64,000 nt of DNA from Gracilinanus agilis (Eukaryota). The stretch spans positions 312,155,007 through 312,219,006 of the forward strand of contig NC_058134.1 of the NCBI RefSeq assembly GCF_016433145.1, read 5' to 3'. The position numbers and the translations under genes were made by a program. The notes below the pieces were generated by a model. It worked only from the letters and a program-made list of their open reading frames with translations, was not told the origin of the DNA and searched no databases. Shown here piece after piece: positions 1 to 40,084 of this stretch (position 1 is its first letter; every line of letters begins with the position of its first letter).

Positions 1-60
1 TCCCTCCCTCCCTCCCTCCCTCCCTCCCCTCTTTCCTCTCTCCCTCCCTCTCTTCCCTTT
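1..60. repeat. (TCCC)n / pyrimidine-rich simple repeat
   Basis: Direct reading: tccctccctccctccc... Confidence 0.95.
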
Positions 61-440
61 CTCAGCAAGTATTGAGTACTTATTATGTGCCCAACACTGT
101 GCTAAGCCCTTGGGATACAAAAAGGGCGAGAACAGTCCATGCTCCCAAGGCGTGCACATTCTGTTGGGGTGGACACCATGGGGCTCTCCCGTTACAGACA
201 AGCTTCATAGTGGCTAGGTGAAAGTTTATATGAAAGGGGAGCCATTAGGAGCTGGGAGCAGGTAGGACTAGAAAAAGTGCCTTAGCGAAGATGGGGTTTG
301 GGCTGAGTTGAGAAGAAATCCAGAAGCAGAGGCAGAGGCGGAGGGGATAGCCAGGGGGAAATGGACCGTTGTCATTGGGTAAGGAGCAGTAATTAGGGCA
401 GAGCACCAGGATCTTGGAGTATTGCTGGAGAGTGAAATGT
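61..440 (-). mobile_element. L2 LINE 3' fragment (ancient)
   Basis: Starts with the typical reverse-complement L2 tail (aagtattgagtacttattatgtgcccaacactgtgctaagccctgggg-like), followed by purine-rich L2 body. Confidence 0.7.
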
Positions 441-2479
441 AAGAACCCTGGAAGACTGGGGAGGAGCCCGTTTAATGCCAAACAGAGGACTTCTATTTCC
501 CCTGCCCATAATAGTGCTTTGGAACCATACATGATAGATATACAAGAATGGTTCCAATTGAATGTAGATGATCTTTGCTTGGAAGAATCAGTGTTTTGTT
601 TCCTTCCCAGCTCTACCGAAGCTGTGGTTTGGGGAAAAGGGAGCATTAGGTACCCTGACTTCCCTGATGTGGGCTCTCCTATTGCACCCAAATCCACATT
701 GACATAGCAGCTGGAATTCCATGAGAACCAAATATTTACTTTAACTTGTTGGCTTGATAATGAATAAATTATTCGCTTTATTTAATTTTATTATCCTGAG
801 CAATAGGAATTTGGCTAAAGATTAACTTTCCGGAGCATTTGGCTTCAACTGGGTTAATTAAATTTCATTTTCAAACTAACCCAAACTTTGTCCGTCTGTG
901 AGGAAATGTCAGTGGCTTGCCAAGGAATTAGGACGACTACTGAGAGAGGGTCCCCTCTCTGATCTACCTCGCAGTAATTCTGTTAATTAACAAATAAATA
1001 AATAAATAGTGCTATTTGGTTTCAGAATATCCTGGATGAGTTCCAGAGAAGTTGACTTCATCTATTTAGTGCATTATGCACAGGAACAATGAGTGCAATT
1101 TTATAGTTTATGAAAATACAGGCATTGACACCACTTGAGGTGATTAGCCAAAATAGAGTTTATTTGGTGGTTCTTTTGCCATTTTGAGTTTGTATTTGAT
1201 GTGCGACACCATGGTAAGCTCATTTTCATTTCATTCTCCTGGGAAGTAAGGGAGTAGTTTCTGCTCCAAAAGTTCATGTTTCTTTTTATTTAGGCCAGCG
1301 ATCTTTGGAGGAAACGTGAAAGAGCATATAAACTTGCGCATCTGTGTGCCTGCTACGTTGTATTGTATTTTATGGTTTGCCTCGCCCGTGGCTGACCGTC
1401 CTTGATGTCGTTAGCAGCCATTTGTAGCCTAACTTCGGGAATGCTGGGAAAGTGCAGGGCACATGTGGAATAATGGCACGAGCACCAAGACGATGATCCT
1501 GAGCAGCCAGCCACGCTCTGTGGAGATCGTCCACTTTAGCGGTCAGGCTCGGCCCCGGAAGCCAGGTCTTCTGACTCCTACGTCAGTGTCTGCTTCTTTC
1601 TTTCCTTTAAAGAATGATTATTGTAATGCAGTTTTCATGCCTCCTTTTTCCTTGGTAATTCTATTGCTCTTTCTTTTTTCCCATTTGGACCACGAATTTG
1701 ATGGCTAAGGTAAGGGTTGTGTGCGAGGATATTCAAATCCAAAAAAGGCCAAGTCCTGTGTCAGATTCCTTTGTTCTAAAGCTGTTTGGGGTTTTAAAGA
1801 GCCGGGGCCTACAAGCCAAGATGTCTCTTGAAGGAATTCCCCTTCAGCATTACTTTATGTGTCTTCTTAGAGAACTCGGTGCTCAAGAGATCAGCTCTTA
1901 CCCGAGAGTCAGTTTTCAGAACAAAACTTTTTTGGCGAGCTTAAGCAGCGTGGGAGAGGCAGGGGCTAAGAAACTAAAAGGAAATTTGAAAATATTTTGG
2001 CTTTCCTTTTTTTTGAGAACAGGCAGCTTTTTGGAAATGTTCATTTTTGCTTTGGGACCTGGAAGGAAAGATTAGAGAATAATGGCTGTTTCAGTAACAA
2101 ACTGTTTGAATAATGTTCTGAAAAAATGAAATCTAGCTTCCTCCCCAACTAGACAAGCTTGCATTATCAGCTTATCCTTTTCTCTGACCTTTCTCTCAAT
2201 CTTGCTGCCTTGAAATCTAGAGAACTGTGAGTGCTAAACAGCATGGCATTGGACTGCGTTTTTCAAATGGGAAAGATAAGTGAAGGACAGAGTACTGCAG
2301 GAAGGTGAAGAAATGAATATTAGGGTGTGTTATTAATAAGCAACATATTCTTATGATCCATCTTTCCCCTTTGATTGGTCAGACTCCACTTGGGAAGGGC
2401 ACGAATAAGCATTCAGATCCCTCGGGGCTCCCCAGACATCTGCTGGTTAGCCAGATGGAGCCATTCCGGGGCGCAGTTT

Positions 2480-3225
2480 GGAACAAGGCTCAAAGGCTCT
2501 AAAACGGCACTTGCCCTTTGACCCATCAACACGGGCACTTGGTCTTTATCCTGAGGAGATTTAAAAAGAACCAGGACAGGACCTAAACGTACAGAAATAT
2601 TTATCACAGCTTTCCACGGGAGCCAAGAATTGGAAACTGAAGGGATGTCCGTCCACTGGGGAGTGGCTGAACAAGCTGTGGTCTGTGATTGTGGTAGAAA
2701 ACTGTTGGCCAAAACAAATGACCAGGAGGTTGATTTCAGAGAGTTACCCAACCCGATGCAAAGCGAAGTGAGCGGAACCAGAACTTTGTACCTAGTAGCA
2801 ACAGTATTTCTTGATGACCAGCCGTGTATGACCCTGGTTGTCCTCAGCAATGCAGGGATCCAAGACTCATGATGGAAAATGCCATTTGCCCTCTAAGAAA
2901 GAACTGATGGGGGCCGAATGCAGGCTGAAATATAAGTATATATATAAGAAATGTAAGTCCTCCTCCTCCTCCTCGTCCTTGTCCTTGTCCTCCTCGTCTT
3001 CCTTCTCCTTTTCCCTTCTTCCTTCTTCCACAAAATGACTGATATTGAAAAATGTTTTGCATGTACAATCTATGTCAGGTTGCACTGTCTCAAGTAAGGG
3101 GGAGTGCAAGGAGAGAAGGAAGGAAGGTCAGAAGAAGGGAGAGCATTTGGAATTCAAAACTTTACAAAAATGATGTTAAATTTTTCTTTTTACATATGAT
3201 GGGGGGAAAATAAAACATTTAAAAT
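2480..3225 (+). mobile_element. Marsupial L1 3' end (ORF2 C-terminus + 3'UTR)
   Basis: Motifs ccctttgacccatca, gagccaagaattggaaactgaagggatgtcc, atgcaaagcgaagtgagcggaaccagaac; ends AATAAAACATTTAAAA. Confidence 0.85.
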
Positions 3226-3284
3226 GATGACAACAACAGGTCGAGCATTCCTTAAATGTCAGGTTGTGGGTGGGGAGGGGTAGG

Positions 3285-3525
3285 GTGTCATTTTCAGTCA
3301 TATTCAGTTCTTTGTGATCCCATTCAGGGACTTTTTTTTCTTGGCAAAGTTACTAATGTGGTTGGTCATTTCCTTCCTTCTGCAGTTCATTTTACAGTTA
3401 AGGAAACTGAGGCAAACAGAGCTAAGAGACTTGCCCAGGATCACACAGCTAGTCTGAGGTCAGATTTGAATCTAGGAAGATGATGCTAAGCCTGGATTTC
3501 TATCCACTGTGCCACCTAGCTGCCT
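3285..3525 (-). mobile_element. MAR1-type CORE-SINE
   Basis: tttgtgatcccatt...ttggcaaag...cattttacagttaaggaaactgaggcaaacag...acttgcccaggatcacacagctag...ccactgtgccacctagctgcc. Confidence 0.85.
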
Positions 3526-3539
3526 AAGAGGAAAGTAGT

Positions 3540-4660
3540 TTTTAAAAATAATTTTTATTTTTTTTTCATTAAATATTTTCCAGTTACATGTAAAAACAAA
3601 GTTTTAAGTTTTTAAAATTTTGAATTCCAAATTTCATATCTCTCCCTCTCCCTCTCTTCCCCTCTCCCTTGTTGGGGGAGGTAAACAGTTTGATTTCACA
3701 TATATATGTGTGTTTGTATAAAATGTATTTCCATATTAGCCAGGTTGTAGAAGAAAATACAAATAAAATAAAACATAAAGAAAAAACTTTTAAAGAACTC
3801 TTCAGTCTGCACTGAGTATTCATTAGTTTTGTCTTCTGAAGGGGGAGAGTATTTTTCATCATGGGTCCTTTGGAAAGTCTTGAATTGTTGCCGTGATCAG
3901 AATAGCTAAGCCTTTCACAGCTGATTATCCTTACAGTATTGTTGGTACTGAGTACAATCTTCTCCTGGTTTTGCATCAGTTCATACAGGTCTTCCCAAGT
4001 TTTTCTGAAACCATCACTTCTTATAGCACAGTAGTATTCTATCACCGTCATGTATCACAACTTGTTCAGCTATTTCTTCATTGATGGGCATCCTCTCAAT
4101 TTCCAATTCTTTGTCATCATAAAAAGAGCTTCTGTGAATATTTCTGAATGTATGTGTGGGTCCTTTCCCCTCTTCTTTGATCTCTTTGGAGTATAGACCT
4201 AGTGGTGGTATTTATTGCTGGGTCAGAGGGTATGCAGAGTTAGAGCCCTTTGGGCTTAGATCCACATTATTCTCTACAATGATTAGACTAGTTTCAACTC
4301 TATCAACAATGCATTAGTGTCCCAATTTCTCCACATCCCCTCCAACATTTATCATTTTCCTTTTTTGCCAAGTTAGCCAATCTGATAGGTAAAGGTGGTA
4401 CCTCAGAGTTGTTTTAATTTGCATTTCTCTAATTAATAGTGATTTAGACCATTTTTTCCTTGGGATTTCTTCTTCTGAAAACTGTCTATTCATATCCTTT
4501 GGCCATTTATCAATTGAGGAGTGACTCTTGTTTTTATAAATTTGGCTTACTTCCCTGTATATTTGAGAAAATAAAACTTGCTGCAAAATTTTCTCGTTTC
4601 CTCTTTTCCTTCTAATTTTGACTGTCAGTTTTGTTTGTTCAAAAATACATTTTCATTTTT
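3540..4660 (-). mobile_element. Marsupial L1 3' end
   Basis: T-rich tail, then reverse-complement L1 3'UTR and ORF2 C-terminus (track ORF 4314..4586- reads REMQIKTTLRYHL). Confidence 0.9.
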
Positions 4661-7600
4661 GCACTTTTACTTTGTTGTGGTTTGTTGTGTCCTTCCTTTG
4701 GTGACTTAATTTCCAAATGAAATTTGTTCATGGATGATCATCAAACTTTTAAATAATCATTTACAATAGTATTCTGTACTACGCCACTCATTTTTTTTTA
4801 ATTCAGTTTAACAAGTACTAGGAACTTCTGTTGTCTTTTGATGTCGAACCTGACTTATTTTTGGAATTAAATTCTCAAAATTATATTTCCAAACGACTCT
4901 GTAAGAAACTTGGACTCTACCTGATAAGCCGTCACCTTTGAGGAATGGCTAGTTAAAATTTCATCTACAAGAAAGCATTTTAAGGTTAAAGCGAGAGGTT
5001 TTAAAAAATCTTCATTGCCTGTTTACAGAGGACGGTAACGGATTACTGTGAACTCAAAATGCCAAGCCCCTTTTAAAAGGGAAATGTCTCATCAAAGCAG
5101 AAAGGAGAACATTTCAACAACAACCAGGGTTCGTTTTTTCTTCCCCCTGCTATGCCAGCGTTGTGGTGCCGCCACTTTTTCTTCATTTGAAGACCATGTA
5201 GTGAAATGGATAGTAGTTTGGGAGCAGGTCGTGTTCTAGGATGCCACATTGACGTTTTCCTTTCCCGTTAGCTTGAGAAAGAAACAGAACGGATTTGTCA
5301 GGGTCGGTGATTCACCAGAACGGAGACATTTGATGGGCAGCAGGACCACTCTGCCACCTTTGAAACAAAGAGCTGGCTGCCTTGTAGGCTGCCATCTGGC
5401 TTGGAGAGCTTGTACTATGCCAAGAGACGCAGCCCACATGCAGAAAAGTTGTGCTTGAGGGCAGGAGGAAAGGTCTTCTTTTTTCTGGGTCTGCAATTTG
5501 TAGAACAGTGTCATTTATGTTGAGTTTCATTCCTGCCGTTAAATAGTCCAATAAATGCCTTCCCCTTTTTCTTTTGATTGAGTTTTTTGTTTCATTTTCT
5601 GCACCTTTTTCTAAAAAGGATGCTTCCCTCCTCTTTGGTGTTTATCTTCCCTTTCTGTCTATTTCTTAGTTTTATTCTTTAAATTGTGGTCTTTATATTT
5701 GTTTATTCCTTCTTTTATGGAATTCTTAGAGACTGAAGTTGTCTCTCTACTGGTTATCTTTGGTGCTGCTTTTAATGCCGGCGCTTTGGGGGGGAGGGGG
5801 TTCTCTTCTTCTCCTCTGTGTGTTTGTGTTCCCAACTAGTTGTTCTAGCTTCCGTTTCTTGAATGAGCTTTAGCTAGAGTGGATGCAAGTGTTCCGTTCT
5901 GCTCATTACTTCTCAGTTGGGCCTGAGTGGAAAGACAAGGGCAGGGGCCTGAGGAAGTACTTGGGCATATAAGGACAAAAAATAGGATCGAGGTATTTCA
6001 GTTTCTTAGTGTCTCTTGCTATGAGGCTCATGGCTGATGGCAGATAGAGAGCGCGAGACCGTGTGTGTGGCCGCGGGGGAACTAAGGAGCCTGCAGGGTC
6101 ACTGAGGCCCAGGATCCGGGTGCTGCGCGCATTTCGGGGCACATAAGCGCATGTTTTGAAGTCTTCCAATGTCAGGCAGAAGTGAGAGTGGAAACAAAGA
6201 GTGGGAAATGGGCCCGGCATCCGGCGGGAGATGAGGGAGAATGACCTGGAGCTCCCAGGTGAGAAGCCCAGGCTTGATGCCATGCAGCTGGCCCAAGTTA
6301 CTAAGTGATGGAGGCCAAGAGAGTCCACAAGTGACCGAGGAGCGCAGGGAGGATTGCAATTCTTCTTCCAGACCAGTGTGTCCTGGCTGGGAAAGGAGGT
6401 TGGTCAGAGATGCAGGGCCATCTGGGCAAAGCTGGGTTTCTCTGAAACTCCCATAAGATAAAAATAGCATGAGAAGGGCTGCTGGGGAGCTTGGTGCACA
6501 GAGGAAGTGGGAAGTCCTGGGTTCAGATCTCAGACACCTCCTAGCCGGGTGACCCTGGGCAAGTCCCTGTGTAAAGGGTAAAATTATGTTTGGACTGGCT
6601 ATTTAAGAGTTTTGGTCGCCAGGAATCAGTTTTCACAAGTCAGGATGACTTTTATGGTAGCTTATTTACAACTATGAAGAGTGAAGGTAGGGAAAATGAG
6701 AGAGAGAGAGAGAGAATGAGGGAGAAGGAAGGAACCAAGCAGGGTTTCAGCGGCCCCAGCAAAGGGGGGGCACAGAGGTAATTAAAGAAGGCTACTAGCA
6801 TGAGGCCTCCTCTAAGACAAGAGGCCTCTTTCGGAGAGGCTGGAGCCTCCAGAAACGCCAAGGAGAGGGAGTCAGCCTTAACTTCCCCACGTGACAATTC
6901 AAAGGGGAAGCCGTCTGAGGTCTCCCCTGAGCTCCTCCAAGGGCCAAAAGCCCCCGCACAGGAACACGTGGACCAATGGCAGCCTCAGCCCTGTTTCGGG
7001 GTGCCCAGGGGGCAGCCACTTGTTTCTGATGTGTCAGTCACTAGCACGTGTGGCTCCCAGACCTCCCCCTCGCCCCTTGAGGCTAAGTTGGGTGGGAGAT
7101 GTTGCCCCCAGCTGCCCAGCCCTTGCTGCTCTTCTCCCTTGGGAACGCCATTCAGTGCCAATTCTGAATAGAAGTGAGGTTTAAACAATGGGCTCGAAGG
7201 GAGGAGAAGTTCATTTTTTATGAACAGAACGCCACAGGGCCCACGTCTCTGCGGCATTGCTTCTGCCCTGGTCCCTTCACTAAAGCTTCTTTCTCGGGGT
7301 TAGCCGTAGCCTCCACTTACCAGACCTCATTTCAGCATTTCAGGCCTCCTCTGGGCAAAGGTCCGACCTCTTGCCCTGCGCGTTTGGCACGGGCTCCTCC
7401 TTTCCCCACCTGGACGGCCCATGCTCTTGGCTCTCTCGCTCCTCTCCCTGCTTGCTGGCCGCTTCTCTTTCTTCTCTGCTAAATGTCCATCTTTGTGGCC
7501 GGGGCGCCAGCAGCCTGCCTCCACCCACGTGGTCAAAGCTTGTCACTTGTGCCCTCCAGTGGGCAGATGGTGCCATGCGCGCCCCCGCAGCCTCCCTCCC

Positions 7601-9160
7601 CGTCCCGGCTCGCTCTCAAGCAGCAGCACTATTTGGTGTCCTTCACTCAAGCTTTGTTTGCTGCTCTTTTAACTCCAGGACTTCCCTCTGGCCACTGGGA
7701 CCGGTAGAGACGGGCGAGTGTCTGAGCCTTCCCAGGCTGGGCCCGGCCTCGCTTTGCAGGAGAACGTGATACGGGTTACCCTGAGTATGTTCCCGTAAAC
7801 TCGTTATGATAACCGTTCTTGTATGTCGTTTGCTCTTCTCAGGTAGATTTTCTCTTCTCCAAAGGGATGGACGGTGCTGCTTTGTTTAGTCTGGGTGTCC
7901 CCGTGCCTGTCACCGGGCTTGTCGCTTAGAAACATTCGTTTATCATCCATTCAGGGTTCTTTAGGGCACGAGACAAGTCCTGGGTTAGAGCCTGGAATGT
8001 GAGGCCTCCTCTGGGCAAAGGCCCGGCTTCTCTTTCCGTGCCTGCTGTCTTTGGCGAGGCTCTGGTTACCGTCTGGAGGGAGGCAGAGGCTTTGGCCTTT
8101 CTCTTCTTTGTGCCTCCTTTTCCTCCTGGGGCCCCCCATCTCTCTCCAGCTGGCTTCCTCCAGCGAGCTTTCCTTATTACGGGAGCCCAGTGTAAAGCCC
8201 GCAGGCGGCTCTTCTTCAGGCACCCTCCTGGTCTTCCTTCTTCTCCTTGTGTGGGCAGACATGCCCTGTTTTCTTGAATTTCTTCTAAAGTGAGAGACAA
8301 AAACACTTCATGCTTTTCTGCCTCATCCTCCCCCAAACTCAGTCAGGTGCTCTTGCCCATTTGCTCTCTGTCTGTCTGTCTGTCTGTCTCTTGCTTGTTT
8401 TTGCTTACGATCAAACTCAGCTTGGAATGTATTATGTTGTCTCGTCACAGGGTGGGAAGAGGCCATCTGGTGCATCTGCTGTGTTAAGAGATTTCCATGG
8501 CGATAGCGCACCGGACTGGTCCCGTCGGTCCCTTCTGTTCTGCGGTGTTGTCTAGTTCTGAAGAAGGCTCGCCAGGTTAGGAGCATTTCAGCATAGCCAG
8601 CAGCCACAGGGAGCCACTTGTTTCAGCTGGGAAGTGACAGCATGGCTCCTCCTGAAAGAAGTGCTGCTGCCTCGCCGACTTTGGGGCATTTGTGCCAGAG
8701 ACTGGCATGAGGCTGGTCACTGTTTGTTTCGGACTTTGGGAAGACGAGGTCAGCTCCGTGAGGAAGGGGGGCCCTTCCTGTTGTAGCCTTGAATCTCTGG
8801 GACCCCGTTAACTCTTACTAGCGCGGTCTGGTTCTTCAGCGGCTCTTGCCATCTGCTGTATGGTATCGTGCAGGCCTGCTTCTGTAGGAGAACTCTGTAG
8901 ACGTGTTCTCAAGCCACCCCTCAGTTTATCAGTCTGCAGAACATCTCTGCGCAGACACCAAGGTAATTTCTCACACTCGAATCAGCCTTGCGTCGCAGGA
9001 AGACTTGGGTTTGGAGTCAGATGACTTCTTAAGGGTATGAATCTGCCCCTTCTTGTGGCTCATCTCAACTTGCTACCTGTCTCTTCTATAAGCATTATGA
9101 TCCTTTTGCCATTGACCTTGCAGGTTTATAATGAGAATGCTTCTCCCCCAGCTCCATCTC

Positions 9161-9191
<31 letters not shown>

Positions 9192-9329
9192 CCCTCCTGC
9201 TTCCCTCCCTCTCTCTCAACTCAAGCTGAAGTGTGTCATGCTGTCTGATCACAGGGTGGGAAATCATAACCCTTTACATCTCTCGCATCCGTAGCCTTCT
9301 TTCCAAAGCACGCAGCAACAGCTCCCCAC

Positions 9330-9990
9330 AGTAAACATTTATGAAGCTTCCTCTAGGCAAGACACTGCGCCAAGTGCTGGGCACACAAAGAAAGGGGTGA
9401 AAGACATCGTTCCTTCCCTTGAAGAGCCCAGATTCTAACGGGAGAGACAATATAAAAGAACTCTGTACATAGAGACACATGAAGCGGAGTCTTGAAGGAA
9501 GCCTGGGAAGGAAGAAGGAAGTGGGGTGGGAGGGATCTGGTTTTAGGCATGGGGAAGGACCAAAGGAAAGACACGGACCAGGACTGCCTGGTACTGTGTC
9601 CAGGGAGTGGCTCTTGTAGATTACCTGGAGGGGAAACCGAGGCGGGCTGCCCTGGACTTTACATGCTGCAGTGAAGCTACTGAGCAGAGCCTGGAGGCAG
9701 ATTAACTTTGAGGCTGGGGAGAATTATGGCCCCAAGCCTGGAGCGCTCGGGGCCTCCTAGAATTTAGATGGCACAAATGGCCAGATTTACACCAGATGGG
9801 TACAGCAGAGGTGCTGAGTCTGACCCTGAGGAGATGGCACCCTTGACAATAATAGGAAAGTCGTCAAGAGGACCGGGTTGGGGAGCAGAGACAACTGTCT
9901 AAAGGCAGCAGGGCTGGGGGGGTCTGGTTGTCATTTACATGGAGATGATAATAGAACCTGTGGCCTTCCATGCAAGCTAGCGGAGATGCC
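9330..9990 (-). mobile_element. L2 LINE fragment
   Basis: L2 tail-like start (aaacatttatgaagcttcc...gtgctgggcaca) followed by purine-rich L2 body. Confidence 0.65.
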
Positions 9991-10004
9991 GAGATAGCCC
10001 AGAG

Positions 10005-10085
10005 TAGAGGTTCTTAATCTTTTGTGTCTCAGACTCTGCAGTCTGCTGGAACCTAGGAAGCCCTCCTTAGAATACTTTCTAAAAA
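10005..10085 (+). mobile_element. hAT-Charlie (MER3-like) DNA transposon fragment
   Basis: agaggttcttaatcttttgtgt...gcagtctgctggaacctaggaagccctccttagaata resembles the recalled MER3-type end. Short and diverged. Confidence 0.4.
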
Positions 10086-10349
10086 CTAAACTGTTTTTCA
10101 ATGATCAAACATTTTTTTTTCTCTCCCCCCCCCTTAAATTTCACTAGGGAAAGTAAACCAAAACTCTTCCAATAACTCTATGTGATCAAAGACAGCCATT
10201 CCCACACAGACCATGCGTTTCTGTCTTGTTTGGTATGTTTAGTCTGTTGCTTCCCTTTCCAGAAGGGATGCAGCATTTTTCATCCTCAGCCCTTTAAAAG
10301 CATGGCTGATAACTAGAAAGAGAAAACAGAAGGGGAAGGAACAGGCGTT

Positions 10350-10560
10350 TGTTTGTTAAGTGCGTCCTATGTGTCAGACACTGTACGCAAATAGAATCCC
10401 TTTGATCTCACAATGACTCTATGAGGTAGGAACTGTCATTATCCCCCTTTTATGGTTGAGTAAACTGAGGCAGACAGGTCTTTCTTGCTACTAGTGTCTG
10501 TGGCCAGATTTGAATCAGGTCTTCCTGCCTGACTGCAGGCTCAGCCACTAAGCCACCTCA
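10350..10560 (-). mobile_element. MIR/CORE-SINE
   Basis: ctcacaatgactctatgaggtaggaactgtcattatccccctttt...taaactgaggc. Confidence 0.7.
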
Positions 10561-10849
10561 CTACCCCGGTCATCGTCATCGTACTCATTGGAGTTCTGAA
10601 GTATTTAAAAATGATTTGTTTTTACAGTGGGGTTAGAGTATGGATTGTTCTGGTCCTGCATCAGTTCACACCTTTGGTGTCCACCTTTCAGCCTGCTCTC
10701 ACCTGGGGTGCCGAGAAGCTGTGCCGGGCACAACTTGGGAAATCTGCCTCAGCAGATGGGCTAAAACTGGGTGGCGGGAAGAACACTGAGAGAGCTCTGG
10801 CCGATGTCAGTGCCAAGGTCTTCCCTTGCAGGCCAGGCCACTGCCTGAC

Positions 10850-12080
10850 TCTGGAAGGGAACGGACTCAGCACCTTCACAAAAATCGCCTGTACAGTAGG
10901 ACCTAAAAGCCTCACAGCCAAATGCAGAAAAGGAGAAATAGTAACAGCATCGTTTTCAGGCCATAATGCTATAAAAATGTCACTCACCAAAGGGCTGCTG
11001 GGAAAAAAAGGCTAAAAATTAATTGGGAACTCGACGACCTTATCCTCAGAGAACCAATCATAGAGACGGTCAACAGTATCATTAAAGAGGATGACAGGGA
11101 GCTGATATTTCACCAAAGTAGTATACAGGGGGAAATGTATATAGCTCAAAATGCTTTACATCAGGAAAACAGAGAACGAACAGATTCATGAATCAATGGG
11201 TAGGCAACAATTAGAAAAAGAACAAACTTTAAATTCCCAATTAGAAAGCCTGAAAATCAAAGGAGAAATGAGTAAAATTGAAAGTATTTGAACTAACTAT
11301 TGAAACCCATTGAACTAAATAAAGCAAGGAACTGGTTACCTGACAAAAGCCATAAAATAGATAAACCAGTGGTTAATATGATTTAAAAGGAAGGGAGAAA
11401 ACCAAGTTAGCAGTGTCAAAAATGAAAAGGGCAAATTCATATCCAATGAAGAGGAAATTAAAGCAATTCCTACGTGTTATTTTGCCCAATTTTGTGCCAA
11501 CAAAACTGACACTCTAAGAGAAATATCTTCACATTTATGTAATTTTACCAAATATTTGCCAAAATACAAATTGACCAGATTAATGGAAGAGGAAATAAAA
11601 TCTCAGATAAAGAAATGGAATAGGTTACCAATGAACTCTCTAAGGAAGAAGCCCCAGGCAGGGCTACATAGATTCACAAGTGAATTCAACAAAATTTAAA
11701 GAACAATTGATTCCATATACATGTAACGTCTATTCCATGTACTTACTAACTCTGTGTGTGTGTATGTATATGGAGAAACAGCTGAAAAAAGAATTCTACC
11801 AGATTCTTTTTATGACACAAATATGGTGCTAATGCCTAAACCAGAAAGCGAACAGAGAAAGGAGACTCTGGACCAATCTCCCTAAGGAATATGGATGCAA
11901 AAATTTTAGATAAAACACTAGTAAGGAGATTAAAGCAATATATCACAAGGATCATACACGATGGCCAGGTAGGTTTTGTATAGGCACGCATTAGGACAAC
12001 TCAGCTTGATTGACCATCTCTGTAACAAAACCAACAGAAACTGTATGATTGATTATCTCAGTAGATGGCAGAAAAAGCGA
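10850..12080 (+). mobile_element. L1 ORF2 fragment (endonuclease end to RT start), degenerate
   Basis: Reads as TFTKI..VG.KSLTAKCRK.EIV.ASFS.HNAIK (L1 EN, consensus HGTFTKIDH...FSDHNAIK) and ends near IIS.DAEK. Confidence 0.88.
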
Positions 12081-14544
12081 GGATCTTAAGAGACCAGCTT
12101 CCATCTTGGAGGAGGCCTCGTGCTTACTCACTGCTGGCCCTCCTGGCTGAGGACTAGTACAGGTATTATCTCTAACCTCTCCCACATTTCTCTACTCTAT
12201 TGTTTCCCCTCTAATTTGGTAATAAACTTCTGTCTTGAGAGATATGATTTTAGTGACCACGTTATTTCATATAATTTAAGTCCAACCTTTAAATTTAACC
12301 TCTACACACCTCGGTTTCCCCTTCTTTCTTTGATCTCTCCAGGCACCAGGGCCTCCTCATAAAGTACACAGGTTTACCAAGAAAATCATATTAAAATGTA
12401 ATTATCAAAGTGTAGTTTTTAAAGTTCGTGTTCCCTAAGTTCAGTATTCCTCGTGTAGAGGGATAAGAGGACCCGGGACAAAACTTTGGGGGGGTAGCTA
12501 AGGAGAGTGAGCGTGCCAGGAACAAAGAAGCCCAGGGGAGTCTCTGAAAGGAGCCTTCAGACCGGTAGGAGATCGAGGATAGCACCCAAAGACCTAGAAA
12601 GGAGAAAGGACGCAGGCAGAGCCTGGGCAGAGCAGGGCCAGAGGTTTGCAAGAATGAGGATTGGGAAAAGAACATGATCTTTAGCATTAAGAAATCATTG
12701 GTAGCTTTGGAAGGGTCAGTTTTAGTTGGATGATGAAGTGTGATTCCAGCCTGGAGGATTTCAGCGGGAAGGGGAGAAGCTTCTGCTGTAGCCTGTAGTT
12801 CTGTTAGCCTGCAAGGACTGGGGTGGGAGGAGAAAGATGTGGAACCATAGATGGCCCGAATGATGGGCTCAGGGCAGGGCTCTTCCGGACGAGGGAAACA
12901 TTGGCGTAGCCGGGATGGAGGCCCTAAGTAGGAAGAGTATGATGGTGGGGCGTCCGCCAGGGAAACTGAGGAGGAGGAGGAGGAGGAGGAGCGCTGCTTC
13001 CTCTTGGGCAGGGAAGGGCACTTGAAATTCCTCCAGGCTACATGGAACTGCAGGTTCCGGGGGGCCTCAGGACCGGAGAACCCCCGCTTAGACAAGTAGC
13101 AACGAACGTCAACTTCTTGGTGACTTGAAGCAGCCGAGGCCGGTGTGCGACGGGCTGCGTTTCCCCGGCTGCTCCAGGTTTCGCCTGGGATCTTCCGTGG
13201 GTTAGAACTGTGAGCCCAAGGTAGGTCCATTTGTGCTTGGGTTCTCCAGTTGTTTTGGAACCTCTTCCTTCCAGGACATCTTTGGGAGAGACACTAGGAT
13301 CAGAAAGGACAGAAGAGGTGAATCACGGGTCTGCTCACAGGTCTAGAGAGCTCAAAAAACTAGAATTTACTCTCTGAAGTCCACAGTTGAATCCGGCAGC
13401 TCAGTGATTCTTTTTAACCTGCTCGAGAATTTCCGGCATTTTCCTCGTTTCTCATAACTTTGAATAGCTTTCATCAATCTTTGTTTCCTGTTTTTATGTA
13501 ACAAAAGAACCTCCAAGCAACTTCATTAACATTCGTCCTAGAAACACATCTGAGACTGTGATGCAGCCGTGAAGCCTTGTTAAATGAAAGTGCCAGAACC
13601 AAAAACTTGTGCTCAAAGCACATTAGATTACCGATTATCCCCTAATCTCGTGTGATTCTGAGCTCTGGAGTGGGCACGGCTCGGCCAAAGACCTTCATCG
13701 CATCTGATCCCTTTGTTTTAAAAATGAATGTTTAGAAAAATCAGAATCTTTCCCCAGGAGCCAGCCAGTGTTGGAAGCGTTTGTTGTTGTGGCCGCCCTT
13801 AAAAAGCTTTATTGATCCTTCCCCGCAGTTCCAGGCTCGCCTCTCCCGGGACAGAGGAATTCCTCGCTGGTAGTTTATTAGCCGCCTGGTCCTGATGGTG
13901 AATGAAGTGTGGCTGCCATGCCCTTTTCCCTTTTCTTTTCTCTTGGTTCCTTGTTTCCCACACTCCCGCTTCCACTTTAATTTCCCCGTTCATTTGAGTT
14001 ATAACCTGTAGTATAGTTTGATCGATTTGCTGCCTCATTTTACTAAAATGTGTTGAGGAAGCCAAGACTCTTCCCATTAATTACAAAAATAATTACTATT
14101 TGCTGATCCTCTTGCATGCCATTCTTTGAAATGGATGCGTAATTGCGTTTGTTGGTCAAGGGACAGTTAATTCTGGGTTGAGATTTATGTGACTTCTTCA
14201 TATTTGAGAGGACGAGAACCTTTTGCAATTTAAGGAGAGAACGGATATGTCGCATGCTAGACAGCTTCACTCTTAGACAGCATTTACTCTTAGTGAAAGA
14301 CTGAAATAAAAAAATTACTTTTTTAAATCCAGTATAGCGTGTCCCAAAAATTTTAGTGCAGTTGTCAGCCTTAATACCTTAAAAGATTTAGTAGCTTGAA
14401 AATGCACTAAGACTTTGGGGGCATCCTATGTTATTAGTTAATGCTCTGGTGGGAAGACTTCCATATTTTATATTGTAAAAACAAGTGGTTCATTGTTGGA
14501 TCAACATGCTCAATTCATAGGCATGGAAGTGGGTTCATTAAAAA

Positions 14545-15680
14545 AACTTTTTTTTTCAGTTATCAGATACATTTTTTTTCTCCTCCATCTTTCCATTCCT
14601 CCCTGGGGAGGGAGGAGGGAGAAGAATAAAACCCTGGTAACAAAGCTTAGTTGGGCAAAACAGATTCCTTTTACTAGCTGAGGCTACAAATATGTACGTC
14701 ATTATACGTATTAGTCTATCATTTCTCTGGCAGGAGGTATGGCGTTCTTTATCAGAGGTCCTTTGGAATCATGATTGATCGTCGATTTAATCAAACTTCT
14801 TAATTCTTTCAAAATTGTTCATGGTCACAGTATTGACGTCAGAGTATAAATTGTTCTATTTCATCTCATTTCACTCTGCAAAAGTTCGTACAGCTATTTC
14901 CAATTTTCTCCAAAATTGGCTTTCTTCCTCCCCCCCCCCATACAATAATATAGCAATACATTAACATCCCATAACTTGTTCCGATATTCTCTGGTTGAAG
15001 GACATTTCCTTAGTTTTCTGTTCTTTGCCACTGCCAAAAGAACCAAAGAATATTTTTTGTACATACACATCCTGTTGTTCTTGGGTCAGAGGGTATGGCA
15101 CGTTAGAGATGTCCCATGGTTACCCGTTGCTTCCTGGCATGATCGTACTGATTGGAGGCTCTCCTTGCAGGCCTCACTGTGCCTGTTTTACGCTGCTCCA
15201 ACAGCACCGTCGTTTTCCTTTTTTTGTCCCCTTACCAATCTCATCCGATCCAGATACTTTACTTTTACTTTCTCTGATTATTAATGACTTGGAACATTTT
15301 TTCACATGGCTATAAATAACTCAGATATATTCACTTGAGAACTACCTGTTCATATCCTTCAACCATTTATCAGTTAGGAAATGGCTCTTAGTTTTATACA
15401 TTTAAATCATTCTTATGTCTTAGAAATGAGACCTTTATCAGAGAAATTTACTGTAAAGAATTTCTTCCAGTTCATTGTTTTCCTTCTAACCTTAGCTGGG
15501 TTAGATTTGATTGTGCAAGACCTTAATTTTATGTAATCAGAATAGTCCACTTTATCTTTTGTGATTTTTTTTTATCACTTCATTATGAATACTTCCCCTT
15601 TTTATAGATTCAAAAGGTAGTTTCTTCCTTGTTCCTCTAATTTATGATCTGACCTTTTATAGCTTAGTATATGTTTTATT
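14545..15680 (-). mobile_element. L1 3' segment (3'UTR to ORF2 HDLDIK region)
   Basis: T-rich tail at 14548, then marsupial L1 3'UTR and ORF2 C-terminal reverse complement. Confidence 0.85.
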
Positions 15681-15689
15681 TGTGTCAGA

Positions 15690-16440
15690 TAAAGGAAGAC
15701 CGAATACCTACTAGATATAACAGAGACAAGAAAAAGAATTTCTTCAGGAAATGAGCATAGGTAAAGAGAAAACAAAGTCATTCTTTTTTATAGATGATAT
15801 ATATTTGGGGAATCCTAAAAAGAGTCAACTAAGAATTAATTAAAACAATAAATTCAGCAAAGTTGTTAAATGTAAAATAAGTCTGTGGAAATCATTAGCA
15901 TTTCTGTTTGTTGACTAAAAAAGAGCTAGAATAAGACATTCTATTCAGAAGAACTAGAGAAGTTATAAAATATTTAGAGGTGTATCTAACAAATATACTC
16001 TGGAACTATATAAATATCATTTGTTCATGGGTAGGTTGAGCCAGTAGAATAAAAAGGACAATAATACATAAATTAATTTACTTATCAGTGCTATTTGAAT
16101 CAAAGTATGTTTTTTGGGCAAGAAAAAAATAATTCATATGGAAGAGCAAAAGGTCAAGAATCTTAAGGGAAGAAAGCTATCAATACTGGATTTAACTGTA
16201 CTCCAAAGCAAAAGATCTGCTACTAGTTAAAAAATGCAGAGTACAATCAGGAGAACAGAGTAGCTGCACAAAATATAATAACACACTTCTTAGGGTTCAA
16301 ACCCAGAGACCTCAGTTACTGGGGGAGAGATTCACTGTTTCTTCAAACCTTCTGGGAAAATTGGATAAAGGTCTGCCAGAGATTAGGTTTAGCCCCATCA
16401 CGGTATACCATGTGCCAATGGAAGCATGACCCAGATAAAA
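15690..16440 (+). mobile_element. L1 ORF2 RT-to-C-terminal segment, inverted relative to 14545-15680
   Basis: IG.EK.KSF.F.DD.Y..NP (degenerate LFADDMIVYLENP) near 15760-15820; ends in WENW...LG..H.T.YT...W.HD.DIK. Confidence 0.85.
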
Positions 16441-16682
16441 AACACTTGTCTTTCAGATTTATGGGACGCTAAGACCACACAACCTGATTGGCTTGAGCTC
16501 CCCATACTCAGCTTTTGGATCTATGGATGGGGATTAAAGATACCAGGCTAGAGTAGTCGTGGTCTATTTAGATTTGGTGGGTGGTTGAGACCACAGCGGT
16601 CACCATACCCTGATGACTGATTGACCAGACAGTTGTCACAGAGATAGGGAGATATTCCTTAACTTACTCAGGACACCGAGGT

Positions 16683-16872
16683 CCTCTACCCATTTTTTTT
16701 TTTTAAACCCTGAACTTCTGGGTATTGACTTATAGGTGGAAGATTGGTAAGGGTAGGCAATGGGGGTCAAGTGACTTGCCCACGGTTACACAGCTGGGAA
16801 ATGTCTGAGGCCAGATTTGAACCTAGGACCTCCTGTCTCTAGGCCTGACTCTCACTCCCTCTACCCATTTTT
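16683..16872 (-). mobile_element. Opossum-type SINE (SINE-1_MD-like), 5'-truncated, with TSD
   Basis: CORE gtcaagtgacttgcccacggttacacagctggg; direct repeat CCTCTACCCATTTTT at 16683-16697 and 16858-16872. Confidence 0.93.
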
Positions 16873-17249
16873 AAAAAGAAAAGGGTAAATGTAAATTTTT
16901 GTTTCTTTGAAAAATATGTGAAAAAAGAAAACTGTGGATTTTTGTAGAATAGGGGGTATTAAGAACCAACTGTCACATATTTCCTATGTCTGGTGATCAC
17001 CCTTCTCCCAAATTCTAAAGTATATTCTAATATTTCCACATTTAATTTCAACTTTTCACCTTTTATTAGTGAACTGAGGCCCCCTACTCTAATAAACATG
17101 ATTTATTTATTTATTTAATAGATTGGAGGGACCTTTTTAGATAGAAATGGGAATCACTAAACCATATGTAGAAAACCATATATTAACATTATCTCTGTTT
17201 TATTGTATTTTTATTTATTTCATTAAATATTTCCCAATTATATTTTAAT

Positions 17250-17478
17250 CTGAGCACCTGAGAGATGGGTCTGCTGTCAAGAAGACTTATCTTCCTGAGT
17301 ATGAATCTGGCCTCAGACACTTGTGTAACCCTGGGCAAATCACTTAACTCTATTTGTTTCTGTTTCCTCATCTATAAAATGACCTGTAGAAGGAAATGGC
17401 AAACCACTCTAGTATCTTTGTCAAGAAAACTCCAAATGGGATCACCAAGAATTAGATACAACTGAAATTACTGTTCAA
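17250..17478 (+). mobile_element. MAR1-type CORE-SINE
   Basis: ctggcctcagacactt...ccctgggcaaatcacttaac...aggaaatggcaaaccactctagtatctttgtcaagaaaactccaaatggg. Confidence 0.85.
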
Positions 17479-17980
17479 CACTTTTTAATCTGGCTTGGCC
17501 CCAACTCCAAATTTGTTGCCTGCCACCATGTTTTATGCCACTGAGATTTATATAGTTAATCAGCTCTGATAATATGGGGTCAAATATAAAATAAAGTAAA
17601 TTCTGAAGTCTTCTTAGGTTATTTTGCAAAATTCTTTATAATTAAAAGATTTCTCCTAGCTGTAATATCTTATATTTTATTTCCTTGTCTTTTCATGGAG
17701 TGATAAAATCTGAAAGTACTTCTATTTTAAAAATATTGGCAAATATTCAGTGTTCCCCTTAACATAGATGGGCAGATGGAACTGAATCAAGGTAAGAATA
17801 GACTGCAGAGAGGCCCTGAGCAAAGCCGATGGAGCCATATTTTAATTACTGCCCCATTCTGTGTTTATGTCCCATTAATGCTTCAAAAATAAATTAAGAG
17901 GTTTTTCTTTTCTTAGTCTGGAAAAAAAAATGCAGTTCCTCCCTCATTGTCCTCGCCCCTGATGCTTGGTTTCTATTATT

Positions 17981-18291
17981 TGTAAGAAATAAAATTAATA
18001 TAGAGTGATAAAATTAAAAATATCATGGTTTCAAGGGTTTATTGAAAGCCATTTAGAAAAATGAAGCCACGTGCCTATTGAGTTATTTTAAAGGGACCTG
18101 CCATTTACCTGTTCCTCCCATCCTCCTGTTCCACAATCACAAAAGCGGAAGTACCAATGCCATCCTCAGTCTTTATACTCCTGGTTATGTAATTATACTT
18201 CCTGCTCACCTGATTATACAAGAGGAATCATGGGAAGTGTAGTTTGAAAGAGATCTAAATGTTCAAGAACTCCTAAATTTCCATTATCACA
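17981..18291 (-). mobile_element. ERV solo LTR (related to 60895-61275)
   Basis: TG...CA termini; shares tgtaa..taatataga.tgata, ccacgtgcc, ggaagtacca and aatcatgg.aa.tgtagttt with the 60.9-kb LTR. Confidence 0.7.
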
Positions 18292-19112
18292 TTTTGTAAG
18301 TTGTCGAATGATCACCTTGGAGCATTTGAGTCTCTGTAGCTACACGTGGGCTTTGGGGTGTATCAGGACAATGAACCGTCACAGGAGATGCTCAGTATGC
18401 TCAGTATGACCCTATGGGTGTTGGGGCCAGGGTGGTCTGATTTAGTTAGAAAGAACATAGGATTTTAATGAGGCTTTGTCAGACTGGATCACCACTCAAG
18501 GTTCAGAATGGTGACTGGCCCAAATTGGATTGCACTGGGTCTGGGTGGAGGAAAGGGCATTCCCTGACTAAATGAGAGTCCTTCCAGCCTAAGCCAGCAG
18601 GAGTAACCTTGCCCTGGTTTATAGTTGTCCCGTGGAATGAGATAACGAATAAAATAATATTAAAACTTTGTTTTCTTGAAGCCCTGAGGATGTATCCTAA
18701 GAAGTTTGTGAGTTTTAATATGGGAACATCAGCTTTCTTTTGTTGTCTCCTGTATTATTAATATGTACTTGGAAAAGAGATGTGTCTCTGTGTTTCTTTT
18801 CTAGTCTAGATCTCTCTACCTAATCATGTAAAGTCCTTTGATGATAGTGTTTGGTTTCTGAAATTTAAAATAAAATTAGAACCATTTCATTTTCTTTCCT
18901 TCATATTATCAATTAGAGCATAAGTTTCACACCATCAGTATTCACGGCTCGGCTGTTGTGTCCTCTATCCTACCTCAGGCAAGGGGAAATGAGAAGTTAT
19001 GTGTGATTTTTTAAAAGTTCTTTTCCATTTAAGTTTTCATTCCCTTTTCCTTAGTTTATTTTGGTTGTTTTTTGTTCATAAAACGTTCTTTTTTGTTTCT
19101 GTTGTTGTGTAG

Positions 19113-19178
19113 TTTTGTACCAATGGCTAGAAGCACATCGTCATGGCAAGAGCCAAGATGAAGTAAACACAGTTTCAG
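19113..19178 (+). CDS. DENND5B: DENND5B alternative (cassette) exon in intron 1, 66 nt, phase 1-1, encoding (V)LYQWLEAHRHGKSQDEVNTVS(G)
   Basis: T-rich tract ending TGTGTAG (AG 19111-19112) and donor CAG|GTAAAA. The frame is open and symmetric. The peptide closely resembles the recalled mammalian DENND5B long-isoform insert VLYQWLEADRHGKSQGAANTTS, which sits just before GENFDQSP. Confidence 0.88.
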
Positions 19179-19674
19179 GTAAAAAAAAAAAAAAAAAAAA
19201 AAGGTGGGATTTAACAGTCATCAGCCCATGAATCCTTTGGGGCAATGTGTCTACTTAGCTTTGCTCAAATAAGCTTTTGGATATGGTTGAGTAGTTCTAG
19301 TTTTTTTGTTTATATGTTAATTTTCTCTAAAACCTTATTTTATGTTGACTGTTTTTCCCCCTTTTTGTCCCCAGCACATTTCACAATTCATTGGCACATA
19401 GTAAGTTCTTATTGAATGATTGATTGGCCTTCAGTGACATGTATTCTCCTTTCTCAAGAGGAAATAAGTTCATTGCCTATGTAGTCTAGCCAAAGAGTCT
19501 ACTTGGGGTTTAAATTAAATTCAATCTCTGTATTTTTATCATCAGTGGATTTTGCAAGTATGCATGCATTTGTAACCCATATTTTTCTTTTGGACTTTGC
19601 ATGTGCTTCCTTTGCTTTTGCTGCCCCCTTCTGTATCTGTACCTTGCACTTAGTCTCCATAAAAAGTCTTTAGA

Positions 19675-23223: not shown

Positions 23224-23333
23224 GAGAAAACTTTGACCAAAGTCCTTTGAGAAGAACTTTCAAGTCCAGGGTTTTGGCCCACTACCCGCAGAATGTAGAA
23301 TGGAACCCCTTTGACCAAGATGCAGTAAATATG
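23224..23333 (+). CDS. DENND5B: DENND5B exon 2 (110 nt; uDENN start): (G)[36 protein letters not shown]
   Basis: Acceptor TTCCTTCTAG, donor ATG|GTATGT. Translation matches the DENND5B N-terminus and joins in frame to exon 3 (LCMPKG). Confidence 0.97.
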
Positions 23334-23990: not shown

Positions 23991-25321
23991 GACCTCGGAT
24001 GGGCCAATGAGCTCGAGGGAGATCAGAAAAGACTTCCTGATTGCAAACTGAGGGGAGGTTCCACCAGTTGGGGAACAAACTGTGGCACGCGTTGCTGGTG
24101 GAGTCCTGGGTGCGGTGAGAAATGATAAGCAAGGTGCTTTCAGAAAAAGCTGGAGAGAAGCAAGCAGGAGCAGGAGAGCGCTGTACACGGTGACAGCAAT
24201 GCCGGACGAGGGTGGTCTGTGAAAGTGGGGCTCCTCTCAGCGGCGCAGAGATCTGAGACAGCCCGGAAAGACTTGGGGTGCGGAATGCTCTCCCCCTCCA
24301 GAGAAAGGACGGCTGGAGTCGTCCTTCCCTTCTGTGTCTTTAGGCTTTGGTTGTGTGTGAGTTTGCTTTTACAACCATGACCAATATGGAAGTGGGTTCT
24401 ATATGACAATAAAAATAAAATTAAAAAGGAAAAGACTTCTCGTAGAAATTGGTGCCTGAGTCTAAGGGAGGTGTAAGAGGCTGCACCCAAAGAGGAAGAG
24501 TGTGTCAGTAACCCGAGCCCCTGGGCTCAGCCCTGGAGACACCTGGAAAAGCAGAAGACAGTCGTGCCTTCAAGGAGCTCACCGCAGAGCAGGGCTAGTA
24601 CCTGGGTCCCCTCCTTATATGCAAGGGGGGCTGGGAGGGGTGCTCTGGGGCCTACCATCTGCTTTTTCCAACCCAAGAAAGAGATACTGAGGAGGGGCGA
24701 AGAGCAGAGCTAGTGTGATCTTGGAAGTCAGCAGAGCAGCCAGGTGGGAAACGAGGAGACGGAGCATCTCATCCCTGGAAGACTATTTTAGGCCTGGAGA
24801 CAGATTGTATTGCTGTGGAAATAGAGGGAAAAATGTCATATTGGTTACACGAGTGTCTTGTGTGTTAAAAACCTAGAAAGCTCCGTGGGAGCTGGATTGC
24901 GAGGGGCCGGGAGTTTTTATTTTGTCTCGGAAGCACTTGAGTCTCCCAGGACGGTGATTGGGAAGGACGTTTGGAAGCCCGTCCCCTCAAGGCTACTTGA
25001 CTCTGCATCCCACTAAAAAGAATCAAATCGACCGGATTAAAGAAACGAATGGCACATCGTTGGGGTGAACTTATTTGATGTACATGGAAATGCCAGCCAA
25101 GGATCTTGGGTGGAGAGGAGGGAGAACCCCCACAGGCTGCCCCGGGCCCCAGAAGTGTGCTTCCCCTGAGAAGGCAGAAGAGGGGCCACGGTACACGCCA
25201 CTGACTGAAACATGGGGCTCGTGCCGTCTCCTCACTGGGGGCTCCGCTCCCTCACTTTTTAATCTCCATTCCCACGACTGAGCAGAAGCTGCTCTCGCCC
25301 AGGTCACCGACCTTTTCTGAG

Positions 25322-25358
25322 TTCTTCTTCTGTCTGTCTGTCTCCCTCCCTCTCTCTC

Positions 25359-25399
<41 letters not shown>

Positions 25400-25435
25400 G
25401 TCTGTCTGTCTCTCCCTTCCCCCCTCTCTCCCCTC
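25322..25435. repeat. Compound (TCTG)n/(TC)n microsatellite
   Basis: Direct reading. Confidence 0.95.
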
Positions 25436-25651
25436 ATGATTTAGAGCTTTTTTTTTTTTTCAGTTGACTGTAGATAGCTTTGATTTCTTCTGAAAGCTGC
25501 CAGGCCTGCCCTTTAACCGTGTATCAACTAGGGAATATTTGGCTCTAATTTTTGTCAGTTGGGCTCAGTTCCCTTTATATTTGAGAAGTGAGGCCTTTAT
25601 CAAAGAAACTCACTGTAAAATTTTTTGCCAGCCGAATAATTCTTAAATAGA

Positions 25652-32821: not shown

Positions 32822-33488
32822 CTTTGTATGCCGAAAGGGCTGTCGTTCAGGACTCACAAGGACAGCAGAGACCCCCAGTTCCATTCCTTTATCATCACCC
32901 GGGAAGACGGCTCGCGCACCTACGGCTTCGTGCTCACCTTCTATGAGGAGGTGACGAGCAAGCAGATCTGCACGGCCATGCACACCCTGTACCAGATGCA
33001 CAATGCCGAGCGTTACAGCGGCGTCTGCGCCTCGTCCTCCTGCAGTCTGGACTCCCTCACCGGCAGCATGGATGAGGGAGATGCAACGTCCCTCGCCAAG
33101 CTCCAGCGCTACAACTCCTACGACATCGGCAGAGACACCCTGTATGTCTCCAAAAGCATTTGTCTGATCACTCCTCTGCCCTTCATGCAAGCTTGCAAGA
33201 AGTTCCTGCTTCAGCTCTATAAGGCCGTGAGCTCCCAGCAGCCCCCACCCTTACCGCTCGAGAGCTACATCCACAACATCCTTTACGAGGTGCCCCTTCC
33301 TCCCCCGGGCAGGTCGCTCAAGTTCTACGGTGTTTACGAGCCTGTCATTTGCCAGAGGCCCGGACCCAACGAACTCCCCCTTTCAGACTATCCTCTTTGG
33401 GAAGTCTTTGAGCTTCTGGGGCTGGAGAATCTCGTTCAGGTGTTCACATGTGTTCTTCTAGAAATGCAGATTCTCTTATATTCGCAAG
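32822..33488 (+). CDS. DENND5B: DENND5B exon 3 (667 nt; uDENN/cDENN): [43 protein letters not shown]...[11 protein letters not shown]
   Basis: Acceptor CCCCACAG (AG 32820-32821), donor CAAG|GTGAGT. ORF-track entry 32828..33535 covers it. DENN-family motifs present. Confidence 0.98.
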
Positions 33489-39786: not shown

Positions 39787-39896
39787 GCCAGTGCTGAATC
39801 TCAAAGGGAAAGCATTCATTCTCTAGTTGTGTGAGCCCAAGAGTCGTCCCAGGATTCTGTGCTTTTACTTAGTGCCATTTCCCTCTCTTTTTGCAG

Positions 39897-40084
39897 ATTA
39901 TCAGCGCCTGATGACAGTGGCAGAAGGGATCACCACACTCTTGTTCCCGTTTCAGTGGCAGCATGTCTATGTCCCCATTCTTCCTGCTTCCCTCCTTCAT
40001 TTTCTTGATGCTCCCGTCCCTTATCTGATGGGTCTCCAGTCAAAAGAAGGAACCGATCGCTCTAAACTAGAACTTCCGCAGGAG
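39897..40084 (+). CDS. DENND5B: DENND5B exon 4 (188 nt; cDENN): (D)[62 protein letters not shown]
   Basis: Acceptor TTTTTGCAG, donor GAG|GTAAAC. Contains the canonical c[18 protein letters not shown]...DAPVPYLMG motif. Phase 1 entry continues exon 3. Confidence 0.98.

Follow-up and report, generated by a model that had tools for sequence, protein, structure and literature searches.

The marsupial copy of DENND5B exon 2, a probable ancient alternative cassette with a proposed regulatory role in the longin lobe

Introduction

DENND5B is an exchange factor for Rab39 (PMC2958468), and variants of DENND5B and of its paralogue DENND5A lead to neurodevelopmental disease (PMC10940048). A small second exon of DENND5B is listed in public gene models from a wide range of species, placentals among them, and these models comprise isoforms both with and without it. 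The exon is therefore already known from annotation. It is genuine and very old, and its recognition in another genome is no new discovery. A search of the accessible literature found no paper that discusses the insert encoded by DENND5B exon 2 and no functional data on it.

Here we describe this exon in a 64,000-nucleotide stretch of the genome of the marsupial Gracilinanus agilis (hereafter the window; all positions refer to it). An initial annotation, made from the sequence alone, had pointed to a hidden in-frame cassette exon of DENND5B. The exon was indeed hidden from the track of open reading frames, but not from public gene models, many of which list the cassette. Our analysis makes it very probable that positions 19113-19178 are the marsupial copy of DENND5B exon 2, an ancient alternative cassette for which we propose a regulatory role in the protein. 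Beyond the initial annotation, we assign the cassette to the vertebrate ancestor of both paralogues, describe a conserved element at its acceptor and place the insert inside the longin lobe of the protein.

Position, reading frame and splice sites

The cassette exon (exon 2) lies on the forward strand at 19113-19178, between an AG at 19111-19112 and a GT at 19179-19180. It is a separate small exon of 66 nucleotides, a multiple of three, with phase 1-1. The first two nucleotides (TT) complete a Val codon that opens with the G of the upstream exon, 19115-19177 reads LYQWLEAHRHGKSQDEVNTVS without a stop codon, and the last G forms a split Gly codon with the GA at 23224-23225. The product is (V)LYQWLEAHRHGKSQDEVNTVS, and the whole 22-residue peptide is VLYQWLEAHRHGKSQDEVNTVS. 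Coordinates, splice-site ends, phase and translation agree exactly with those first proposed.

The acceptor region spans 19068-19112 on the same strand, and the sequence directly 5′ of the exon ends in ...ttcttttttgtttctgttgttgtgtAG. A TTCAT site resembling a branch point is present at 19075-19079, with its A at 19078, 34 nucleotides before the acceptor. It shares the acceptor side with a T/G-rich tract, TTTTTTGTTTCTGTTGTTGTGTAG. The donor region (19179-19202, forward strand) begins GTAAAA, with no G at position +5, and contains a run of 22 A nucleotides at 19181-19202. No GCATG was seen by eye within about 200 nucleotides of the cassette.

Splice-site shape by itself is no evidence for an exon, because positions 10-23223 of the window contain 1024 open phase-1 segments of 30 to 150 nucleotides bounded by AG and GT, and 35 of these are exactly 66 nucleotides long. 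Such abundance is what could favor reading 19113-19178 as a chance segment of intron unrelated to DENND5B coding sequence. However, when residues 1-105 of skink DENND5B X2 (P0229) were compared with the window by tblastn, this segment alone matched the orthologous insert, with 17 of 24 residues identical at 19112-19183 (E 1.4e-7). The other matches were to exon 3 and the start of exon 4, and nothing else fell below E 0.3. In addition, the position, length and phase of the segment equal those of a snake exon, and its peptide is conserved among other cassettes, as described below. These findings refute a chance origin, to which we give practically no weight. The evidence for the exon is thus its homology rather than the shape of its splice sites.

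The host gene

The next constitutive exon downstream (exon 3) lies about 4 kb from the cassette, at 23224-23333 on the forward strand. It has 110 nucleotides, AG and GT ends and phase 1 to 0, and it encodes GENFDQ...DAVNM, 36 residues after the split Gly. The Pfam uDENN match begins within this exon. A protein search with these 36 residues returned mostly anonymous single-exon fragments, and identity to the best seven protein matches was 92-94%. Compared with skink DENND5B, exon 3 shows 90% identity, versus 80% for bird DENND5A.

The large exon 4 (32822-33487, forward strand) encodes 222 amino acids comprising the end of uDENN (PF03456, 2e-12) and the first two thirds of the DENN core (PF02141, 4.9e-33). 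Its identity is 92% to bird DEN5B versus 71-72% to DEN5A. Further exons on the forward strand were located approximately by tblastn: one for the DENN core at 39896-40090 (PF02141, 3.5e-22) and one for dDENN at 54419-54661 (PF03455, 2.1e-15). Two other DENND5B exons were found by tblastn at about 49229-49786 and 60577-60714. A Pfam scan of three window exons, each searched singly, gives uDENN, DENN and dDENN in this order on one strand, and the RUN/PLAT part of DENND5B lies beyond the window. Because the domain series is that of a DENND5 protein and the exons are closer to 5B than to 5A, the sequence comparison identifies the gene carrying the cassette as DENND5B. The cassette itself is of the 5B type (LYQWLEA) and not of the 5A type (LCQYIQA).

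Motif and tblastn searches of the window did not find exon 1, which ends ...RFAHYFVLCGIDADSGLEPDELA. Since exon 1 lies outside the window, more than 19 kb of intron 1 must precede the cassette. Its downstream neighbor, the GENF[DE]Q exon, is present at 23224-23333, and the upstream neighbor was read from other species and from an exon-1 fragment of the wombat (P0443), which ends ...EPDELA+G as the 5′ junction of the cassette requires. Protein searches with exon 4 and with N-terminal fragments returned no marsupial isoform containing the insert; the only marsupial N-terminal record was P0443, in which exon 1 is read into the intron.

Intron 1 also includes a GC-rich block (0.52-0.55) at 6000-10000. 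Runs resembling tetranucleotide repeats occur near 8350-8450, 9100-9250 and 25250-25440, and in translations of open reading frames such runs appear as RQTDRQTD.

Homologous inserts in other vertebrates

Residues 1-330 of a hagfish DENND5B-like protein, used as a search query, matched 120 vertebrate models of DENND5A and DENND5B. Both flanking exons could be located in 116 of these, and every one of the 116 has an insert between ...EPDEL[AS] and GENF[DE]Q. It reads VLYQWLEADRHGKSSDTANRTS in lizards, snakes and turtles, VLYKWLEADLHGKSSDTADKTS in birds, VLYQWLEADRHGRSQD... in frogs and ALCQWLEAERYGRSQDTPCPNKAS in sharks and rays. The DENND5A insert has 24 residues, and the cyclostome forms begin ALIEWLKDEKSG... 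in lamprey and AFLQSMRTD... in hagfish. Three distant DENND5-type sequences that are presumed to be invertebrate (P0078, P0114 and P0128) have nothing at this site.

Models from seals (Mirounga, Halichoerus) and the wood mouse carry the placental insert VLYQWLEADRHGKSQDTANTTS, whereas that of Grammomys ends ...ANSTS. The window peptide is identical to the seal and wood-mouse inserts at 18 of 22 residues, and to the most similar sauropsid inserts, for example those of a skink and the Komodo dragon, at 16 of 22. Homologous peptides are thus found in DENND5B models from lampreys to placentals. This bears out three proposals of the initial annotation: that the segment is an in-frame DENND5B cassette, that it corresponds to the insert of the longer mammalian isoform, and that DENND5A has an insert at the same position.

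When 25 distinct cassettes of 22 residues are compared, positions 1-3, 5-8, 11, 12 and 16 hardly change, but the tail is variable. The window sequence differs from all 25 at positions 9 (His in place of Asp or Glu), 17, 18 and 21. In its head, which follows the pattern V-L-Y-[QK]-W-L-E-A-x-[RL]-H-G, 11 of the first 12 residues are the majority residue and the exception is the His at position 9. A conserved N-terminal LYQWLEA..HGKSQ and a diverging tail had been noted in the initial annotation, and the comparison shows much the same division, with the head kept as VLYQWLEA.RHG.

Some frog DENND5B models (P0478, P0485, P0165, P0213, P0133 and P0487) have shortened cassettes of 16, 17, 20 or 21 residues versus 22-23, and Pelodytes shows two cassette lengths within one species. 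These length variants suggest alternative donors in the variable tail.

Orthologous exons and selection

The garter snake DENND5B locus (L001) provides a complete comparison, with exon 1 at 1001-1129, the cassette at 9968-10033 and exon 3 at 16603-16712. The snake cassette has 66 nucleotides, AG and GT ends and the same phase as that of the window, and 46 of the 66 nucleotides are identical. In icefish DENND5A (L002), the homologous exon at 7833-7904 is likewise separate, with 72 nucleotides and the same phase. The orthologous loci of a flycatcher (Pitangus), the whale shark, the habu and the toad-headed agama exceed 100 kb.

Between window and snake, the 11 codons that follow the split Val (LYQWLEA.RHG) differ by four synonymous changes and one replacement, whereas the last 10 codons of the cassette contain seven replacements. 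This difference between head and tail shows, at the level of codon comparison, purifying selection on the cassette head.

Alternative inclusion and age of the cassette

Automatic gene models from 11 species include 14 pairs of isoforms whose proteins are identical apart from the insert segment. For DENND5B, these pairs come from the snakes Crotalus tigris (X1/X2 and X3/X4) and Vipera latastei (T1/T2), the lizard Hemicordylus capensis (X5/X1), the frogs Mixophyes fleayi (X1/X2 and X3/X4), Discoglossus pictus (T3/T4) and Hyla sarda (X2/X3), the lamprey Petromyzon marinus (X1/X4 and X3/X5) and the hagfish Myxine glutinosa (X1/X3). For DENND5A, they come from the tarpon Megalops cyprinoides (X2/X3) and the skates Leucoraja erinacea (X1/X4) and Amblyraja radiata (X2/X6). 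The insert is likewise absent from several passerine models of 1268 residues. Many homology-based bird models named "DEN5A protein, partial" (the P0038 cluster and P0293) run from ...EPDELS straight onto GENFEQ; we left them out of the evidence for skipping because such pipelines easily miss small exons.

The human gene appears to offer a further example. A common DENND5B variant, p.Arg52Lys, is numbered in NM_144973.4 (PMC10940048). When a 42-residue placental exon 1 (lemur P0424) is joined straight to exon 3, the first Arg falls at position 52, and with the insert it falls at position 74. Because p.Arg52 fits the direct junction, the human reference isoform appears to have no insert. Thus, the reference numbering of a disease-linked gene seems to omit this segment.

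Because pairs with and without the insert are annotated from hagfish and lamprey upward, the gene models identify the cassette as an alternative exon that dates to the vertebrate ancestor and is present in both paralogues. The initial annotation had inferred conservation since the therian ancestor; conservation is upheld, but the cassette is far older than that, since models with or without it are annotated for hagfish and lamprey as well as for mammals, and for DENND5A as well as DENND5B.

It is conceivable that in this marsupial the exon is real but always included, an ordinary coding exon that the track of open reading frames missed. The long T-rich tract at its acceptor and its good CAG|GTAA donor would suit such an exon. 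On the other hand, snakes, a lizard, frogs, lamprey and hagfish have both skipped and included forms in their annotation, as do fishes and skates in the case of DENND5A; the human reference isoform appears to have no insert; and the flanking sequence described below has the characteristics of regulated exons. We therefore consider constitutive inclusion improbable, and it is likely that Gracilinanus agilis also makes both isoforms of this alternative exon.

In models from the grey seal (X4, P0521), the painted turtle (X4, P0495) and Crotalus adamanteus (P0510), a different short first exon is spliced straight onto the cassette. Because this alternative first exon joins the cassette directly, these three products do not have the strand of the longin lobe that exon 1 encodes. 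Window positions 1-19112 contain no credible match to the alternative first exons of the seal, turtle and rattlesnake models.

Conserved sequence at the acceptor

The 45 nucleotides before the window acceptor (19068-19112) match positions 9923-9967 of the garter snake locus at 38 of 45 positions (z 6.2), and none of 3000 shuffles was as good. For control flanks of the same two loci, z was 0.0 at exon 3 and 2.2 at exon 4, and the downstream flank of the cassette is weakly similar (z 1.8). Similarity extends to the paralogue: the last 30 nucleotides before the acceptor match icefish DENND5A (L002, 7803-7832) at 23 of 30 positions (z 4.1; 2 of 5000 shuffles as good), versus z 0.1 and 1.8 for mismatched controls. 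Window, snake DENND5B and icefish DENND5A have the pattern TCAT...TTTTTGTTT...TGTTGTGTAG in common. A T/G-rich acceptor motif of the form TTTTTGTTT...TGTT(G/A)TGTAG is present in the same three genes. This shared T/G-rich motif is a candidate for a very old site of a splicing regulator.

The donors read GTAAAA in the window, gtaaaaagaaac in the snake and gtaaccc in icefish DENND5A. All three begin GTAA and none has a G at +5, so a donor without this G is common to them. The run of 22 A nucleotides is specific to the window and represents an expansion in this lineage, because the snake has gtaaaaagaaac at that place. Conserved intron flanks together with a sub-optimal donor are typical of regulated alternative exons.

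The same comparison bears on whether the segment might be a relic, an ancestral exon that is no longer spliced in marsupials and survives by chance. Lineage-specific changes in the peptide (three in the tail, and a His where others have Asp or Glu at position 9) and the odd run of 22 A nucleotides right behind the donor are what such a relic might display. However, the frame, AG, GT, branch-point-like site and 18 of 22 residues are intact, and the intronic acceptor block retains its 38 of 45 identities even to a snake. Marsupials and placentals separated roughly 160 million years ago. Because unused sequence would not stay so conserved, a relic is very unlikely, and we continue to regard the segment as a probable alternative exon.

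Place of the insert in the protein

The fold of this region was predicted with AF2 on the public skink orthologue rather than on a joined marsupial protein. In the skink protein the insert corresponds to residues 39-60, and the Pfam uDENN match begins at residue 76. A model of residues 1-245, based on 50 aligned sequences, has a mean pLDDT of 68 and a pTM of 0.62; a longer one that covers residues 1-640 reached a mean pLDDT of 53 and was of poor quality. The shorter model includes a strand at 20-25, a helix at 36-48 (block pLDDT 70 and 67), a segment at 52-61 with values below 50 and the next strand at 76-81; strands and helices of the lobe follow after residue 61. Thus, the cassette head, together with PDELA of exon 1, is predicted to be helical and the tail to be disordered. 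The initial annotation had suggested a short helical module, and a helix in the head is indeed predicted, at moderate confidence. We do not call this helix amphipathic, because its hydrophobic moment is no higher than in shuffled sequences.

A Foldseek search of the model against the PDB returned nothing significant. With VIA-align, residues 12-243 of the model align with residues 8-130 of the longin lobe of DENND1B (3TW8_A) over 114 residues (Z 9.3, rmsd 4.1 Å), and further matches are DENND1A (Z 9.1) and other longin domains (Z 7-8). The skink model thus places the insert, with moderate confidence, in the longin (uDENN) lobe, where it separates strand 1 from strand 2. The initial annotation had put it ahead of the uDENN domain, which is correct for the Pfam match; structurally, however, the insert lies inside the longin lobe, after its first strand.

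Proposed splicing and function

We propose that the cassette can be spliced between exon 1 (...GLEPDELA + G) and the exon at 23224. Its inclusion would lengthen by 22 residues the link that leads from strand 1 of the longin (uDENN) lobe to strand 2. Skipping would join ...EPDELA directly to GENFDQ, as in the presumed invertebrate DENND5 sequences. The choice between the two might be governed by the conserved T/G-rich acceptor element and by the donor without a G at +5. In the longer protein, the head (PDELA-VLYQWLEA.R) may fold into a short helix that lies on the longin lobe, with the tail, rich in Ser, Thr and Asp, as a possible flexible linker. A helix with a flexible tail on this lobe would be expected to tune partner binding or self-regulation rather than catalysis itself. 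We therefore suggest, with less assurance than that both isoforms are made, that the insert modulates the interactions or self-regulation of the Rab39 exchange factor and not its catalytic site.

A bolder version of this proposal is that the cassette is a rare splicing switch, kept for more than 500 million years since the vertebrate ancestor in both DENND5 paralogues and in cyclostomes. In it, the T/G-rich acceptor element and a deliberately weak donor would toggle the first-loop helix and so change the partners or membranes that the protein engages. The age is our own estimate, and we regard this extended scheme as speculative and somewhat doubtful.

Two practical consequences follow. With a coding exon of 66 nucleotides about 4 kb 5′ of the first exon visible as an open reading frame, DENND5B gene models should offer both isoforms. 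The insert is also a reasonable candidate for a functional study of isoforms, because annotation shows inclusion and skipping for DENND5A as well as DENND5B, in species that range from hagfish to mammals, and an intronic element is conserved.

Comparison with known systems

The closest known counterparts are the annotated second exons of DENND5B in RefSeq/Gnomon models of placentals, sauropsids and amphibians, for example those of Halichoerus grypus (X1), Apodemus sylvaticus (X3) and Crotalus tigris (X1/X3). The window exon has in common with them the gene, the site between ...EPDELA and GENFDQ, the length of 66 nucleotides or 22 amino acids, phase 1-1 and 16-18 of 22 residues. Relative to the DENND5B exon 2 of snake, the acceptor flank is also kept. 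The window exon differs from the annotated exons in the His at position 9, in a tail that reads QDEVNTVS and not QDTANTTS, and in the run of 22 A nucleotides after the donor.

The DENND5A exon occupies the same site in the same phase, shares the core xL[YC]Q[WY][LI][EQ]A...G, is annotated as both included and skipped (tarpon, skates) and follows a similar T/G-rich acceptor (...TTTTTGTTT...TGTTGTGTAG). However, it has 72 nucleotides and 24 residues rather than 66 nucleotides, its middle and tail are different, and it belongs to another gene. The DENND5B-like cassettes of the cyclostomes Petromyzon, Lampetra and Myxine also correspond in site and are annotated with and without the insert, but they have 25 residues, of which only the first few (ALIEWL or AFLQSM) resemble the gnathostome head.

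In presumed invertebrate DENND5, by sequence alignment, there is nothing at the insert site, unlike in the vertebrate proteins. With respect to structure, the closest described system is the DENND1B longin lobe bound to Rab35 (PDB 3TW8), with which the modelled DENND5B lobe aligns such that the cassette falls inside the lobe after the first strand. The marsupial cassette is thus no new kind of element, and its nearest relatives are the second exons already annotated in DENND5B.
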